A program made the translations under genes and the position numbers. The notes under the pieces are model-generated. The model saw only the letters and a program-made list of their open reading frames with translations. It was not told where the DNA came from and searched no databases. This document shows positions 6,101-61,563 of a DNA stretch of 64,000 nucleotides, piece after piece. The DNA comes from Saccostrea cucullata (Eukaryota): assembly GCF_032062105.1 (NCBI RefSeq), contig NW_026923836.1:124001-188000 (forward strand). The letters are read 5' to 3'. Each line of letters opens with the position of its first letter. The first letter of the stretch is position 1.

Positions 6101-6445
6101 ATAAAATGATTTGCCACAAGAATGTTTTATTTAATGTTTCTTCAGGGCAATAAACAGTTGAATTTATTTATACCTAGTAAATCTAACACCTTTTCCCCCC
6201 ATTTATTAATGAATTAACCACTATATATATATTTTTTGTGGTGATTTTTATTGCAAGTTTGCAGCCATTTGAAAATTATGAAATTTAGCATGTTCTTGCA
6301 TTGTGTTTGATATTTATGTTGTAAATGTACATATTTTTTGTAGTTGAGGTATGCTGGTCGTGATCACCTGGGGACCCCCGCCACTGGTATAGGTCTGATT
6401 CATCAAGCTGAGGCCAAATCCATACTGCAGCAAACATTCAGTTGA
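165..6445 (+). CDS. DHTKD1: 2-oxoadipate dehydrogenase E1 (DHTKD1), 3' portion; 5' exons lie upstream of the window
   Basis: GT-AG exons that join in frame: 165-299, 565-680, 845-920, 1316-1507, 1829-1930, 2178-2306, 2626-2746, 3041-3180, 3536-3692, 3958-4058, 4174-4275, 4427-4672, 5119-5182, 5996-6081, 6344-6445 (TGA). Motifs include [11 protein letters not shown] (TPP-binding), [90 protein letters not shown] and [12 protein letters not shown]. The C-terminus [17 protein letters not shown] is DHTKD1-like rather than OGDH-like. Confidence 0.93.
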
Positions 6446-7509: not shown

Positions 7510-8059
7510 TAAATGTAAATATTTTCACCCAAATGAATATATCATGATGAGATTATTTTGTGTGTTTAACAGACTGTGTATTCTAACTTTTTAAAGGTAA
7601 TGGATGTATTTTTGTTTTTCTTTAAATTTAATAATCTAATGGTTTTGACACTATAAATATATTTGTGATATTTTGGTTATTAATTATTGTGCCATTTTTG
7701 TGTGAATAAAAACTCAGAACTCCCAAGTATCTTGTTTTTTATTATGCCCTCCTCACCAAAGATTCTTTTGATGTTTAGTGCCAAGGATTTCATTTTCTTA
7801 ATTGAATTCTTTGTGACTTTTTCATTACCATAAAAATATTCTTGACTTCTTGACTTCAGATTGACCTAGCTACTTTTGTTAGACTAACTTTGACCTTGAA
7901 AATTTTTTCATGTTTATTCGTTGTGACAAGGACTTTCTTTTGGTAACAAGATTTTTGGCTTACTTACTTTGGAGCTGACCTACATTGTAGCTAGAAAGCT
8001 GCATTTGAAAAACATGGTTTTAAGCTGCCATGGGAAGAGGAAGGGGAAGCATCTGTTTT

Positions 8060-8588
8060 AACAAGAGGCACATGGGCCACAACGCTCACCTGAGTAGCTT
8101 TGACCATGCTGTTCTTTACCAGATTTACCCCAAGTAATACATATTGTGACCCCACCCTACCCCACAGGTCATGATTTGGACAATTTAAAATCTACATTAT
8201 CCCAGGATGTTTTCACATAAGTTTCAGCTTTTCTGGTCCAGTGGTTCTTGAGAAGTAGATTCTTCAATTCAGTTCAATTCATTTATTGACAAAGATTTTT
8301 CCTTTTAAATTCTTTGTAAAACTTTGATTCCCTAGTGGCCCTGCCCTACCCCCACGGGTCATGATTTGAACAATTTAGAATCTACACTACCCTGTGATGC
8401 TTCCACATAAGTTTCAGCTTTTCTGGCCCAGTGGTTCTTGAGAAGAAGATTTTTAAAGATTGTTCCTATATTTTCTATGTTAAACTTTGATTCCCTATTG
8501 TGGCCCCACCCTGTGAAGGGACTTGGCCCTTAATTTTTACAATTTAAACTCCCCTTCACCCAAGGATGCTTTGTTCCAAGTTTGGTTA

Positions 8589-8625
<37 letters not shown>

Positions 8626-8682
8626 GTGAAAAGTTTACAGACGGACAGAGAGCTAGACAGAAGGACAGACATAATGTGAATT

Positions 8683-8723
<41 letters not shown>
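8060..8723 (-). mobile_element. Non-autonomous Helentron/HINE with ~2-3 internal ~166-bp Cg170/HindIII-like repeats
   Basis: One end is AACAAGAGGCACATGGGCC (hairpin) plus subterminal GCTCACCTGAG. The other end is GAGCCTTCGGCTCAGGTGAGCTAAAAA, with a (GACA/GACG) microsatellite just inside it. Confidence 0.8.
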
Positions 8724-8962: not shown

Positions 8963-9165
8963 TTTTTAGTTTGTAAGAGCTGGAGGCTTAAGTGTCAGAG
9001 CTTTTCTTATTGAAATCTGTCATCATAAACTTTCATTCATTTTCATCTTCTTCTCCAAAACCACTGGGCCAACTTTGACCAACTTGCCAAAAAGCATCTT
9101 TGGGTGGAGGTGATTCAATTTTGTTCGAATGAAGATCACGCCCTCTTTCAAGGAGAGATCATTCA
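8963..9165 (+). mobile_element. Degenerate 5' fragment of the same Helentron family in the opposite orientation
   Basis: TTTTTAG..GAGCTGGAGGCTTAAGTG..AGCTTTTCT..CTTCTTCTCCAAAACCACTGGGCCAA is the reverse complement of the 8560-8723 type end. Confidence 0.6.
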
Positions 9166-9212
9166 AAATTGTTGTTCCTTGTAACCCTATTGCAACAACT
9201 GATTAAGTAGAG

Positions 9213-12200
9213 AAACCAGAAGTCTCTGTCGAGACTGTAGCTCTACTGGTTTGTACTTATAACAAAGGATGAGAAAAGAAGCCATTGCCATCAGACCAAA
9301 ACTGTAGAGGGAGTATCATGTTAAAGGAATTTCACAGAAATTTCTATTTTTAGTAACAATGGTAACACTGTACATCGAAATCAAAATCCAATGCACTATT
9401 TATGTATCTTAGTGTAGTCTACTTGTGTGCCAAGTTATATTGAAATCAGACCAAAACTGTAAAAGGAGTAGCATTTTTAAGGAATTTCACAGAAAATTCT
9501 ATTTTTAGTAACCATGGCAACACCATTCATTGAAATCAAAATTGAATGCACTATTTTTAGCTCTTCTGAGCCAAAGGCTCAAAGAGCTAATGCTATGGCC
9601 ATTTGTGTGGTGTGCGTCGTGCGGTGTGCGTTAACTTTTTAGAATATGGGCCATAACTCAAGAACCCCTTGGCCAATCAGTGTCAAATTTGTCACAGGGT
9701 ATCCTTGGCCCAAGGGCTACCATTTATACTAAAATAAGGGTTGGGACCCTAAAACAAGGGGAGATAATCAGGAAAACAAAACCAAAAGTACTGGTTGCAA
9801 AAAAATCTTCTTCTCCAGAACCACCAGGCAGATTTTCACCAAACTTACATACAATGATCAGGATATGTTGAAGATTAAAAATTGTTCAAGGCATGACCCT
9901 GGGGCAAAGGGCGTGGTCTCACACTTCAAAGTTGACCTAAATTTACAATTAATGAAAATGTCTATATTTTACTTACTATAAGGACTAGGATCATCAAATC
10001 TTGTAAGTAGATGCATCTTAGGACTTCACATCATGTTAACTCAAAAGTAGGTCACGGTGACCTACTTTTTTAATTTTGCGGGCATTTGTTTACAAATTGA
10101 TTTGAAGGCATATTTAGGACACTTTAAGGCCTATGATCATCAAACTTTGTCAGTTGATGCATCTTGGGTCCTTGAACAACGTAACTTAAAAGTAGGTCAC
10201 CGTGACCTACTTTTTGAACTTTATGACTTATCCTGTTTAAAACATTTCATCCCATTATTTCAGACACTGAGAGGGTTAGAATCATCAAATCTTGTAAGTT
10301 GCTGCATCTTGGGACCTTAAAACATATTTAAGTAAAAGTAGGTCACTGTGACCTACTTTTTGAACTTTATGACTTATCCTTTTTAAAACATTTCATCCCA
10401 TTATTTCAGACACTGAGAGGGTTAGAATCATCAAATCTTGTAAGTTGCTGCATCTTGGGACCTTAAAACATATTTAAGTAAAAGTAGGTCACTGTGACCT
10501 ACTTTTAGAATTTTGCAGGCATTTGTTTTCAAATTGTTTAAAAGGCATATTTTGATTACCTTCAGACCAATGATCATCAAACTTGGTCAGCTGATGCATC
10601 TTGGGACTCTGAAAAATGTGACCTACTTTCGACATTTTATGGCTATATTTCAGTATCTTAGGTATTTCTTGGCTTAGAATCATCAAACTTTGTGAGTTGA
10701 TGCATCTTGGGTTTTCGGAGAGTGATGACCAAAAATTAGGTCACGGTGACCTACTTTCAATATTTTATTGCTATATTTATGTATCTCCAGTACTTTTCAG
10801 CTTAGAATCATTAAACTTTGTCAGTTGATGCATCTTGGGTTTTGAATGTCGACCAAAAAGTAGGTCACGGTGACCTACTTTTGACATTAAATGGCTATAT
10901 TTATGTATTTCTGGTACTTATCGGCTTAGAATCATCAAACTTTGTTAGTTTATGCCTCTTGGGTTTTCAGAGAATGTCGACCAAAAAGTAGGTCACAGTG
11001 ACCTACTTTTGAATATCAGGTAATTGGCTTAGAATTATCAAACTTGGTTAGCAGATGCATCTGAGGCCTCTGATAAATGTCAACCAAAATGTAGGTCACG
11101 ATGACCTACTTTTGACATTTAATAGCTATATTTACTATCTCCAGTACTTATCGGCTTAAAATCATCAAACTTTGTCAGTGTATGCATCTTGGGTTTTCGG
11201 AGAATGTTGACCAAAAAGTAGGTCACGATGACCTACTTTTGACATTTTATGGCTATATTTAAGTATCTCCGGTACTTATTGGCTTAGAATCATCAAACTT
11301 TGTTAGTTTATGCCTCTTGGGTTTTCAGAGAATGTCGACTAAAAAGTAGGTGACGGTGACATACTTTTGAATATCTCCGGTACTTATTGGCTTAGAATCA
11401 TCAAACTTTGTCAGTTAATGTATCTTGGGTTTTCCAAGAGTGTAGACCAAAAAGTAGGTCAAGGTGACCTACTTTTGAATATCTCAAATACATATTGGCT
11501 TAGAATCTTCAATCTTAGTTTGTCTATTATGTATCTTGAGTCCTCAGAAAACTTCAGTCTTAAAGTTGGTCACCATGACCTACTCATGTTTTTTTTTTTT
11601 ATAGCTTTATTAAAATATCCTAGTCCTAATTGGCTAAGAATCATCAAACTTTTTATCAGATGATGCAGCTTAGGTTTTAGGATACTTAGGGTTAGAGGAT
11701 TCAAATACAAGTGATAGGTTGTACAATTTATCAGAAGAGCGATTCAAGGCCCTTGGGCCTCTTGTATGTATCTTAGTGTAGTCTACTTGTGTGCCAAGTT
11801 ATATTGAAATCAGACCAAAATTGTAGAGGGAGTAGCGTTTTTAAAGGTATTTCACAGAAAATTCTATTTTTAGTAACCATGGCAACACAATTCATCAAAA
11901 TCAAAATCGAATGCACTATTTTATGTATCTTAGTGTAGTCTACTTGTGTGCCAAGTTATATTGAAATCAGACCAAAACTGTAGAGGGAGTAGTGTTTTAA
12001 AGGTATTTCACAGAAAATTCTATTTTTAGTAACCATGGCAACACAGTTCATCGAAATCAAAATCCGATGCATTATTTTAGGTATCTTAGTGTAGTCTACT
12101 TGTGTGCCAAGTTATACTGAAATCAGACCAAAACTGTAGAAGAAGTAGCGTTTTAAAGGAATTACACAGAAAATTCTATTTTTAGTAACCATGGCAACAC

Positions 12201-12569
12201 CGTTCATCGAAATCAAAAACCGATGCACTATTTCATGTATCTTAGTGTAGTCTACTTGTGTGCCAAGTTATATTGAAATCAGATCAAAACTGTAGGAGGA
12301 GTAGCATTTTAAAGGAATTTCACAGAAAATTCTATTTTTGGTAACCATGGCAACACCGTTCAAGGAAATCAAAATCCAATGCACTATTTTATGTATCTTA
12401 GTGTAGTATACTTGTGTGCCAAATTATATTAAAATCAGACCAAAACTGTAGGAGGAGTAGCATTTTGAAAAATTGTTTACAGACAGACGGACAGCTAGAC
12501 AGACGGACGGACGACGGACACCTTACTATCGCATAAGCTCTTCTGGTCTCTGACCAGTAGAGCTAAAAA
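9213..12569 (-). mobile_element. Non-autonomous Helentron-type element with 156-bp internal tandem repeats, interrupted by a nested element
   Basis: The left end has hairpin AGTCTC-TGTC-GAGACT and subterminal AGCTCTACTGGT. The right end has the inverse ACCAGTAGAGCTAAAAA, preceded by a (GACG/GACA) microsatellite. The repeat register is 11784/11941/12097/12253/12409. Confidence 0.8.
9557..11764 (+). mobile_element. Nested non-autonomous Helentron-type element with 103-146-bp internal repeats
   Basis: It begins TTAGCTCTTCTGAGCCAAAGGCTCAAAGAGCT and ends TCAGAAGAGCGA..AGGCCCTTGGGCCTCTTG. It splits the host repeat GCACTATTT|TATGTATCTTAG within a T-run with no TSD, as expected for Helentrons. Confidence 0.82.
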
Positions 12570-13842
12570 TCTGGTCCATTTTTATGTAGAATTCATCCAT
12601 ACAACTGACAGAATCATGAGATGACCAATTTGCACACTATAACAACAAAACCTTTGCCTGTTTATTCCTTTTTTATTTTCATGACAATACAATATTTTAA
12701 TAACATGCTCTTCTGAAGACACCTGCAGAAGAATATACAGCAACACTTTATTGGAAAATAGCACAGGGCTTAGGAAAGGGTTTAGTTTTCTTTACATTTG
12801 ATAAGCTTGGTATCATGGTTTTTTTCATTGGATAACAATTACTTCAACTTATAGCTTTAACTTTTCCCAACAAATCTTGGACATGGAAATACTTCTCCAT
12901 TTCCATGATTTCTCTAGCTTTCAGCTACTTTCTAAATAAAAGGTCAAATATTTATAGTAAAACCATTAAGAATAAACCAAGGTTGATACACATATATACG
13001 GTACATGAATTATAAATAAATTGTGTGAATACCGGTAGAATTATGTAAGACATACTTTACTGTGTTAATTACTTTCACTTTAATATCTGTATACCGGTAT
13101 GTACTGTACGTAAAACTGGGTTTTGCTGGAATAAAATCATTGTGGTTTTCTATAAAGCCGTCCCAGGATTCTAGGTTCATGCATCGTAAAATTTAAATAT
13201 TTTTTTCTAATTAAAATGTAAAATCTTGTGAGGATTGGTTGGTTATTAACAAGTACAGGTCATATTATCTATTCCCATACTGGTATACCTAAATGCATGC
13301 CTGCATAGCACATCTGGACAAAACAACTCGAGTATATTTTACAATATGATCAGCATATATTCATATATATGACACAATAAACCTTTGAAAGTCACATGAT
13401 TAATCACATGACCAATATAATTTCATATCTTGCATGCATTATGAACACACCACTCTGGCATGATACTGCAAACTGAGAAAAAAAAAGTTCTATATATAAA
13501 ACATCAGATACATATCAAATAATATAAAGAAAATGAATATGACAGTAATGCTTAAAATGAAGATGAACTGCTGGCTTGCTTGAATACAGAAATAAAGCTG
13601 GGAAAAAATATGGATCAAAAATTTCACATGCTCAAGGTACATGTACTTTTCATGAGTTCCAACACTGTGGTTTCACTTTTTTCCTGCTATCCACATCTTC
13701 TTTTTCCTTGTTAAACGGAACCAAACATTCAGCACAAATAATGGATCGTATAGTCAGCAGTGAATATATTTGTTTTAACAGACTTTTAGGCACACTATTG
13801 CAGATCACAGATTTACACTTGTAAAGTTAAACACATGTAATT

Positions 13843-16800
13843 TCAGTACCATCCTCCAGTTAACTTATGAAATAATTCCTCATTGAGAGTTTGATTTTTG
13901 TCCGATGATCTCATGGAAAGGAAGATATATCCTCCAATGAACTCATGCACCACTTTACAGTCAGCACTCAAACAAGCAAAGGTCAGAGTCTCCCCCTCAA
14001 ATTCTAAAATAACATGTCTCACTTCCCAGTTCACATGCCATGATTTCAGACTTCCGTAACGCCATGTTTTTATGGAATCACCAGAGTTCAAGTCCATTCG
14101 CATTATTTTGTTTGGCGATACTCCCAAGAGCTCCTGTAAGAAAATACAAATGCATTCAATTTACATTTATAATACAATGACATAAAATACTATACACATT
14201 GTTTTCCCTTTCTTTTTCTCTTGTGCATTTTTTACCCAAAGATTAACAGTTTTTTCCAAAAACTCTTTACAGGCCCATAAATGATGAGGGTTAAAATAAG
14301 AATGGGAAAAATTTGCTCAAAATTTCTTTCAAGTGGTTAATCAAGACTAAAATTTACTGTAAATTAAGTTTGTCATTGATGAAAAAATAAATACCTCTTT
14401 CTTGGCATTCTTCTGCTTGATGATGAAGTAGCTGATGCCATAATCAGGAAGAGACTGCCAGGCTTTTATAAACGCCATCTTGGAATCCATCAGAGGCAGA
14501 TTCTGGACATTAGCATGGGCCTCTAGTATTCTCTTCTCCAGCTTAAAGGGAATAATGAACAAATTTAATATAGCAGGTTTGCACCTCTTTGAAAATCAGT
14601 AAGTTATGAGGCAAAGCTTTGAATTTTCTTGTTCGGAGGGCTATAAGATATAGAGCTGTTCTGTCTGTAAACATCTGATTTCAAAATGATTTCAATTAAT
14701 AAACAGTACATGTACAGTGTACTTAAAATTACATGTACTTAAATTTATACAGGGCTGTTTAATTAGGGTTCACAAATGTCAAAATAATAATGCTCCATGT
14801 ATATGTATTGCTCTTGCAATTTTTATTTGTAGAGAATATGCTGAATTTAAATATTCTTCCTTATTTCTTGAAATAGAAATTATTGAATTGTCTATCTAGC
14901 AATAGGACCTACTTGTTTCCCTTTTAATTTCTTGTAGAACCTGGGTGCCACATAGTCCTCTGGGTTCTTAATGTCCACCTGTATGGGGGTCACAGGGGCA
15001 TCTGTGGGGGTCTGTCGGCTCAGCAGGGTCCTCAGACTCTGGACCTCAGTGTCGTAAGAACTGTCCGCCATTGTTTTGCCCTGGGAAGCTAACTTACATG
15101 CTGCCATCCACTTGCAATATTCATCTTCCTGAAAAATCATAACATACCACACATTTATACATGGTTGAGAAAAAATATAATTGCAAGCTATTTGAGGAAA
15201 TATAATTAACAGAGCTTAAATGAGCTTAAATCTGTTAACTTTACTCTTATTGTAAACTAAACTGAACTTTTGGTCATTATCTCACATCAGATATAAAGAA
15301 ATATGCAGTATCCAAGATGTGAACCTTGGCTCCTTTCTTCACAATTTGTTTATCTTACCGTTTCAAACCTCAGCCACAGTTCAGACATTCCCTCAGGTGA
15401 TGGGATAAAAAGCTTTATTCCATACTTAGCATGAGAAATGTTCAGATCTGGTTGAGCTTCACAGCCTGTAAAAAGTTGAATGGATAATCTTGTCTTGATT
15501 TAATACACCTTCATTGAAAGAATCTAACACCTAAGCTTCAACTAGGAGCAATGATCATGAAGTAACGGTACACATATTAGATATGCATGTGAGAATAAAA
15601 ATTGTTTATAGTATTGAAATATACTATCTTTAATATTTTTAGCTTGTCATGCAACATCAATGGACTAAAATAAACTATAGCAGACAGACAAAGGAAAAAA
15701 AAAATTCCTTGTAAGGCCATATAAAATTGAAATCTTGGTTCTCAGGCCCGCGCGCATCCGTTTTGAGGTAGCCGCATTGCCGATTTTATTGTATTTTTGA
15801 TAAAATAAAAAGTTGGTGTTGCGGAGACCAATGGGAAAAAAAATTCCTACCTCATTTGTTTCGTAGTTTAGTATTCAAATATCACTTCCGGTAGCCATTT
15901 ACAATGAGATTTTGGCTACTTCGTTTGAAAATACATTCGAGGACATTACCTACGATTTTTACACGCTGTTAAGCAATAGATAAAGCAGAAGTTTTGACCA
16001 GAAATGGAAAGTATATCTGTGATTAAAAAAATTATCTTTATGTTTAAGAAATATATTAAAATTAAAAAAAATACCTTTTCTACTTTATTGCCAATAAAAT
16101 GAAAAATAAAATGCCGCCCTCCCGCATCTGTTTTGGAGAAAATTGGCCTGAGAACCAGGGAATTAAATATAGATAGCCTAATATGTCACAGCCTGCATTT
16201 CATTTTTCTCCCTTTTTTATGATCCCATTCAACAGCTGTTCCATGACCTTTGACCTTACCTTTGATGGATATTTTCATCATTGGACTTCCTGAAGCCTCC
16301 TCCTGACTCTTGAAGAAAGCTATAAATAAATCCTTACAGACACACCAGGCTCTCTTGTAGCTCTTCAAGGTGAACTTTTTAGGTCTGAAATAAAAAATTC
16401 AAAGTTACAACACCTGCAGAGAACTTTCTTTTCTTAGATCATCTTGATAATTTCTATCATTGATTTCTAAAATTTCCCATCCATTTATTGTGAATAATAC
16501 TTTCAATATTTATCTGCTGTCCATTTAGCTGCAGAACTGTAGCTTTCTGCTTGAGAAAATTTGGTGGTATAAATCGAAGGTTTTTACAATATATGGAACT
16601 GTAGCTCTCTGCTTTATCTGTCTGAATTTTCTTGAACAGAGAGCTACAGTTCTGCAGCTACTGTCCAATATAAATGAATGTTAACTCTCTTCATAACTTC
16701 ATACTTTCAATAAATACTTTTAAACTTTATTGATAGTTATAAGTAAACTTACTTGAACCACTTGACATAACCACCAAGTTCTGGTACTGATGTGATGTCC

Positions 16801-59973: not shown

Positions 59974-60999
59974 TTATACAGGGGTACTCCTGCCTGACTC
60001 GCATCCATTGCCTACAGGAAAATCAAAATTACCTTATCACTTACAACAAAAACAAAACACTTCTGTCTGATTTCAAATTATAATGGAATGATGTTCTGGG
60101 GCTGAACAAATACTGCTGCTTGCCACCCAAGGGTAAGTGCTTTTATGGTAGGACAAGGTCTTCACAAATCTATTTGTCAGCCCTTGGTATTCATTTCATA
60201 ACAAGAGGCCCAGGGGCCACAGCGCTCACCTGAGCACATCGGGCTTGAATTTACCCCCCCCCTCCAGGTGTTCATCATTTGAACAAACGAGAATCTACAC
60301 TACCTGAGGATGATTCCATATAAAAATCACTAATCAATTCTTTGAAGTACTTGAAAAGAAGATTTTAAAAGGTTTCCCTATATATCCCTATGTAAAACTT
60401 GGGTCGGCCATTTTGGCCCCATCCTAGCCCCGGGGGGCATCTTTTTAACAAACTTGAATCTGCACTACCTGAGGATGATTCCACATGGGTTTCATCTTTC
60501 CTGGCCCAGTGGTTCTTGAGAAGGATTTTTTAAAGATTTTTCTTATATATTCCTATGTAAAAGTTGGGTCGGCCATTCTGGCCCCACCCTTGCCCCGGGG
60601 ATCATGATTTGAACAAACTTGAATCTACACTACCTGAGGATGATTCCAAATGAGTTTCATCTTTCCCGTCCTAGTGGTTCTTGAGAAGAAGATTTTTAAA
60701 GATTTTTCCTATACATTCCTATGTAAAACTAGGGTTGGCCATTTTGGCCCCACCTTTTCCCGGGGATCATGATTTGAACAAACTTGAATCTACACTACCT
60801 GAGGATGCTTCCACATGAGTTTCATCTTTCCTGGCCTAGTGGTTCTGGAGAAGAAGATTTTTTAAACATTTTTTCCTATATATTCCTATGTAAAAGTTGG
60901 GTCGGCCATTTTGGCCCCACCCTTGCCCCGGGGGTCATGATTTGAACAAATTTGAATCTACACTACCTGAGGATAATGCCACATGAGTTTCATTTTTCC

Positions 61000-61032
<33 letters not shown>

Positions 61033-61563
61033 GAGATTTTTCCTTTATATTCCTATGTAAAAGTTGGGTCGGCCATTTTGGCCCCACCCTTGCCCTGGGG
61101 TCATGATTTGAACAAAATTGAATCTGCACTACCTGAGGATGATTCCACATGAGTTCCATCTTTCCTGGCCCAGTGGTTTTGGAGAAGAAGATTTTTTAAA
61201 CATTTTTTCCTATATATTCCTATGTAAAACTTGGGTCGGCCATTTTGTCCCCAACCTTGCCCCGGGGGTCATGATTTGAACAAACTTGAATCTACACTAC
61301 CTGAGGATGCTTCCACATGAGTTTCATCTTTCCTGGCCCAGTGGTTCTGGAGAAGAAAATTTTTAAATATTTTTCCTATATATTCCTATGTAAAACTTGG
61401 GTCGGCCATTTTGGCCCCACCCTTGCCCAGGGGGTCATGATTTGAAAAAACTTGAATCTACACTACCTGAGGATGCTTTCACATGAGTTTCATTTTTCCT
61501 GACCCAGCGGTTCTGGAGAAGAAGATTTTATTAAAATGCCATTAAATTTTTAACAAATTCATG

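Follow-up and report, generated by a model that had tools for sequence, protein, structure and literature searches.

The locus and the element

The stretch analysed here, referred to as the window, comprises 64,000 bp of contig NW_026923836.1 of the oyster Saccostrea cucullata (positions 124,001 to 188,000) and contains, between two convergent genes, a non-autonomous Helentron (HINE) whose central tandem repeats carry perfect estrogen response elements (EREs) within a palindrome that is under sequence-specific constraint. To the left of the element, DHTKD1 ends with its last coding exon and stop at 6344-6445 on the forward strand, approximately 3.1 kb away, and to the right kindlin (FERMT) has its final coding exon and stop at 13843-14127 on the reverse strand, at a distance of approximately 2.1 kb. 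Both genes had been proposed as neighbours in a preliminary description of this DNA, and searches exon by exon confirmed them (E 1e-28 for DHTKD1, through an upstream exon, and E 1e-35 for kindlin). The array thus sits between convergent 3' ends, downstream of both stops (approximately 6445 and 13843), and a promoter position was rejected, as the array is 3' of DHTKD1 and kindlin alike.

The element occupies 9557-11764 on the forward strand (2,208 bp) and is placed between two T residues without a target-site duplication (TSD). Its 5' terminus (9557-9590), recognised from the sequence, holds a short inverted repeat (9557-9565 / 9582-9590), within which a subterminal inverted repeat (subTIR) lies at 9560-9569. 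On the same strand, this is followed by a left module with a GTGC-type microsatellite (9604-9630, identified from the sequence and the left-module consensus), by the central array (9986-11700), and by a 3' terminus (11731-11764) with a subTIR at 11731-11740 and a hairpin at 11747-11760, in a right module that is conserved between copies (median divergence 1.3%). The subTIRs, 10-11 bp long at both ends, are conserved across copies, and T-rich flanks are found in all complete copies. The nested Helentron of the preliminary description is upheld, since most of 70 genomic loci have the same termini and deletion of the element in silico leaves the host unit intact and with no duplication, as in TT insertion without a TSD. 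No open reading frame longer than 98 aa was found in the element. In these respects it conforms to the published definition of HINEs (PMC4067079, PMC7492417) and is an ordinary member of the class.

The repeat that hosts the element is itself a HINE, located on the reverse strand at 9216-12566 (outer boundaries judged by eye) and built of 156-bp units, five of which contain a 14-bp palindrome resembling an RFX X-box (9508, 11873, 12029, 12185 and 12341). An extra copy of the same palindrome is located at 26538. The intergenic spacer also holds an apparently complete HINE-like element with units of ~170-190 bp at 8057-8722 on the reverse strand, and a truncated HINE-like left module at ~8964-9175 on the forward strand (both judged by eye), so that the spacer is a cluster of four such elements.

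The array of response elements

The central array consists of 13 palindrome-bearing units and a terminal unit without a palindrome. Each unit is composed of a fixed 84-bp module, in which two upstream boxes and a linker are joined to a 27-bp palindrome 63 bp past the anchor, and of a variable tail; the offset of 63 is found in 617 of 727 anchored units. An ERE is defined by two inverted AGGTCA half-sites with a 3-nt spacer (inverted repeat 3, IR3), and ten sites in the array have this form, being perfect matches to AGGTCAnnnTGACCT that start at 10049, 10194, 10340, 10486, 10738, 10862, 10990, 11093, 11220 and 11456. In the first palindrome (10043-10069), the IR3 core at 10049-10063 is bordered by 6-bp A/T-rich extensions, and the extended half-site of ROR and Rev-erb (consensus from PMC7406977) is matched by both arms. 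The other nine perfect sites lie within 10194-11470, together with a degenerate site at 11348 (two mismatches) and a half site at 10619, and the array's last IR3, at 11567-11581, has one mismatch, a variant that is common to two sister copies. The pattern scan therefore agrees with the preliminary description on all ten perfect sites and on the imperfect and half sites, and the variety of spacers and the recurrence of the palindromes every 103-146 bp are also as described. When up to two mismatches are allowed, the window contains 15 IR3 matches compared with an expectation of 1.97, and none of the shuffled sequences had as many as 15.

The window's copy, which is ~1.2% from its sisters, has two private losses, for either of which an assembly error is possible. 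One palindrome lacks its left arm, as a 21-bp deletion seen in this copy alone has left the half site at 10619. A private 4-bp deletion also destroys an ERR/NR5A-type extended half-site in the left module (9917-9925, forward strand), which is intact in 53 of 58 copies.

The family in the genome

In the 1.17-Gb assembly, 18,516 perfect IR3 sites were counted, as compared with 108 for a reversed-pattern control and 908 for IR4, IR5 and IR6 sites together. The 5' terminus of the element has ~1,758 genomic matches, which corresponds to a copy number of ~1,750; the true number may be lower, because a few sampled loci are duplicates with identical flanks. The flanking dinucleotides of the family accompany 11,454 of the perfect IR3 sites, and two estimates place the family's share of all perfect sites at 69-78%. 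Each complete copy contains ~8-16 heterogeneous units of 103-146 bp, with wide variation in unit number, and 504 of 615 family units carry a perfect IR3. The copies are young, with a median of 1.3-1.6% from consensus in the terminal modules. Mobilisation in trans is plausible, because the genome has at least 150 Helitron Rep domains, many of them within open frames of 2,000-2,800 aa; this abundance also points to a large, probably active Helentron population. At two of the sampled loci (L016 and L020), a partial tandem duplicate of the element's 3' part lies directly behind the element, as expected of rolling-circle read-through.

Constraint on the palindrome

Units were extracted by means of their upstream boxes, and the palindrome was not used. 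In the consensus sequences of ten unit types, 16 of 16 core columns are invariant as opposed to 24 of the remaining 68 (Fisher p ~1e-6), and the difference persists when the core is compared with the upstream boxes alone (p 4e-5). Differences between the ten types affect 26% of linker positions, 7-8% of box positions and 0 of 16 core positions. A tree of 41 copies was built for the first three units, in which 24 arm positions per unit were followed. On its internal branches 1 arm change occurred where 15.8 were expected (p 1e-5), and on its terminal branches 30 occurred where 46 were expected (p 0.02); the corresponding figures for an unbiased subset are 1 against 9.9 and 18 against 34. The ratio of shared to private alleles is 3:20 in the half-sites and 81:116 in the rest of the unit (p 0.011), while private half-site changes number 20, with 26 expected (p 0.43). 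The palindrome is thus under sequence-specific constraint. It had been proposed that the half-sites stay intact in changing surroundings, and the remainder of the unit is indeed less conserved than they are; the outer 6-bp extensions, however, are as constrained as the hexamers over the short term (units 1-3), and a bare ERE is therefore not the whole conserved target.

The variability of the spacer had been offered as a foil to the intact half-sites. The spacers do vary, but 552 of 615 (90%) are CGG, CCG, CGA or products of CpG decay of these, so that the contrast is largely one of hypermutability, and spacer variability was rejected as evidence of selection on the half-sites.

As for pairing between the arms, no excess of compensatory changes that keep pairing was found among 526 arm changes, of which 1 is symmetric where 3 are expected by chance. 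Since the frequent outer-arm variants are also one-sided, pairing is apparently not what is conserved, and the upkeep of a hairpin by arm-to-arm repair was rejected. Tolerated variants are found mostly at -2, -3 and -6, and positions -1 and -4 are nearly fixed. This pattern, drawn from few independent events, resembles the ROR consensus.

Candidate receptors

A second description of the conserved letters is provided by the extended half-site for which ROR, Rev-erb and PPAR have a preference (PMC7406977, PMC7310410). Its ROR/Rev-erb form, in which (A)A(C/G)T is the 5' extension, is matched by the left arm in 407, by the right arm in 510 and by either arm in 577 of 615 units. Because each arm matches this half-site and the outer arms are equally constrained, the estrogen receptor (ER) is not the sole candidate. 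The 5' CA extension of the estrogen-related receptor (ERR) and NR5A occurs in 0 of 615 units, and an ERR monomer site within the units was rejected on this ground. A Rev-DR2 family (extended direct repeat, 2-nt spacer) was likewise rejected, as this pattern has only 3 matches genome-wide, and the array is inverted. The earlier idea of an ER/ERR-responsive cassette is accordingly retained in part: the element is mobile and scatters clustered consensus IR3 sites, but ROR/Rev-erb fits as well and the ERR extension is absent from the units.

Oysters have been shown to possess NR3A, NR1D, NR1F and eleven NR1P receptors (PMC4070562). ER, ERR, NR1D and NR1F have been described in the Pacific oyster, as has an expansion of the NR1P group, with maternal receptor transcripts in early embryos (PMC4070562, PMC5041327), and the ERs of molluscs, which bind EREs, are constitutive activators without ligand (PMC2529310). 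The genome studied here holds 80 zf-C4 exon matches.

Explanations for the constraint

We tentatively favour element-level selection for the binding of host nuclear receptors at the 27-bp palindrome, by either receptor class. Candidate binders would be an ER/NR3A dimer on the IR3 core, NR1F/NR1D/NR1P-type monomers on the extended half-sites, or both. With ~ten sites, each copy would open or mark chromatin in the germline or early embryo, and accessible copies would be copied by the Rep/helicase of an autonomous Helentron, a step that we infer. Copies with intact sites would in this way yield more new copies, and neighbouring genes would be affected as a by-product, if at all. The evidence suggests that the transposon, more than the genes around it, is served by the IR3 sites, which are intact mainly in copies that are still spreading. 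Receptor binding, the identity of the receptor and a benefit to transposition are what we infer from the anatomy, copy number, IR3 share, constraint and non-compensation seen in the sequence. In a wider proposal, which we hold to be doubtful, the Helentron central repeats of this genome would be arrays of host transcription factor sites selected at the level of the element, and the dual IR3/ROR/Rev-erb site of the present family would recruit ligand-independent receptors, so that its ~13,000-14,000 perfect sites would dominate the binding map of those receptors and would tie transposition to gonadal, developmental or clock state.

Several points weigh against selection at the level of the element. 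The sample covers 62 independent copies of ~1,750, and 30 of the 70 loci were picked for their similarity to the window's copy; in the unbiased subset, the contrast between internal and terminal branches is borderline (p 0.05). Changes on terminal branches are reduced too, possibly through host selection or a lower rate of mutation, although this mild deficit need not mean host selection, because terminal branches include unsampled lineage history. The degenerate site at 11348 has been inherited by at least 3 sister copies. The spacer is 3 nt long in 637 of 640 cases, but the ~3 length changes are about as many as the background indel rate would give (a rough estimate), and the fixed spacer was therefore rejected as evidence. 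The invariant stem of the core is uninformative on covariation either way, and the CpG decay of the spacers suggests that the arrays may be methylated in the germline.

The constraint could instead be structural, since each palindrome may form a 12-bp hairpin in the single-stranded rolling-circle intermediate and function in replication pausing, in unit slippage or in binding by the element's Rep/helicase, its likeness to an ERE being incidental. Such a role would suit the folding of a perfect site at ~-10.5 kcal/mol as DNA, the constraint on the whole 12-bp arm, beyond the hexamer, in units 1-3, and the wide variation in unit number between copies. We nevertheless consider it unlikely, as common inherited stem-breakers are uncompensated (-3 left in 99 units, -2 left in 46 and -6 right in 101), symmetric changes are not in excess, and other families cluster the same hexamer as direct repeats, which are unable to form hairpins. 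It is also improbable that the palindrome has no function and merely descends from a founder by recent amplification, with conversion or slippage between units resetting the most similar stretch. The youth of the copies, the near-neutral private half-site changes and the largely CpG-derived variation of the spacer are consistent with such a history; the longer upstream boxes, however, are equally convertible and differ between unit types, whereas the core does not, and the 26% difference in the linker indicates that there was time enough for change.

Uncompensated, sequence-specific constraint would be expected for any dimeric binder, and the fixed distance of 63 bp from the palindrome to two upstream boxes is suggestive of a composite site. 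A protein other than a receptor, such as a zinc-finger repressor or a DNA-binding domain encoded by an element, nonetheless seems quite improbable, given that the constrained letters fit two published nuclear-receptor motifs simultaneously and that an ERR/NR5A-type site is found in the left module of most copies (53 of 58). Selection by the host, for ER-responsive enhancers or for a genome-wide receptor sink, was the reading of the preliminary description, and it would account for perfect consensus IR3 sites in clusters of ~ten and for terminal arm changes at ~0.55-0.65 of expectation; the heat shock element (HSE) Helitrons of Caenorhabditis provide a precedent (PMC6927752). Inherited changes, however, are far more constrained than private ones, and the units are without the ERR extension. 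The window's copy is 3' of both genes and, unless the assembly is in error, is missing one palindrome as well as the ERR-type site, losses that give no indication of the locus being protected by the host. We regard selection by the host as very unlikely.

Relation to known systems

The element is like Cg_HINE of Crassostrea gigas (PMC7492417) and DINE-1/HINE (PMC4067079) in having subTIRs, a 5' inverted repeat, a microsatellite, central tandem repeats and a 3' hairpin, as well as a TT target, no TSD and insertion into other repeats. Cg_HINE differs in that it mostly has no more than 5 units of 140-180 bp, as opposed to the ~8-16 heterogeneous units of 103-146 bp seen here, and the accessible part of its description reports no receptor motif (PMC7492417); this comparison is one of descriptions, and the family may already be named. 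Literature searches of incomplete coverage returned no description of bivalve Helentrons with arrays of EREs or nuclear-receptor sites.

Another example of dense clusters of host factor sites in a rolling-circle element is that of the Caenorhabditis HSE Helitrons, which hold almost two thirds of the genomic sites (69-78% here) and whose authors propose a selfish gain of HSEs (PMC6927752). A different factor is involved in that system, where binding and gene induction have been demonstrated, while the present case consists of sequence, with the addition of constraint on inherited changes. In Drosophila miranda, a Helitron with MSL sites has similarly spread the binding site of a host protein (reviewed in PMC9301316), but there the sites serve host dosage compensation, and those described here are perfect and in tandem. 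EREs have also been described in mammalian mobile repeats such as Alu (reviewed in PMC9301316); these are retroelements and the ER is ligand-dependent, as opposed to a DNA transposon with ~ten perfect sites per copy.

The role of the ligand-independent mollusc ER, and the places where it binds, have long been an open question. Should most perfect EREs belong to a single transposon family, that family would dominate all binding maps and ERE-based predictions of targets in this animal. If the favoured explanation is true, HINE central repeats would be selected landing pads for host factors, which would be a testable reason for repeats that are otherwise unexplained; even if binding fails, the family advises caution when estrogen signalling is deduced from EREs in the vicinity of mollusc genes.

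Other repeats

In the flanks of sampled loci, two repeat families without detectable homology to this one cluster the same hexamer as direct repeats, which supports the generality of such clustering. These tandem-repeat elements with clusters of the direct-repeat nuclear-receptor hexamer were observed in the last ~600 bp of the 3' flanks of L023 and L056, and the one at L056 has the same extended half-site as the Helentron family, with no detectable unit homology. Homology of the Helentron's unit to the host unit, to a 166-bp array in the window, to its own left module and to other hexamer-rich repeats was rejected, as the scores fall within the shuffle range.

A further 1,547 perfect IR3 sites in the genome are without T flanks; they occur mostly in one other A/T-flanked context, with a nearly fixed spacer and mostly one site per place, and are probably a second repeat family. 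An array with a period of 147 bp at C7:45388-45843 has four perfect IR3 sites without the family flanks and is possibly a third IR3-bearing family. Elsewhere in the window, the 166-bp array (60272-61535, 7.6 units) has a unit length typical of the oyster Cg170/HindIII family, a 34-bp array of 20 units is located at 51255-51916, and an inverted pair of 10/21-bp tandem arrays (48827-48932 and 49412-49514), ~480 bp apart, suggests a small foldback element.
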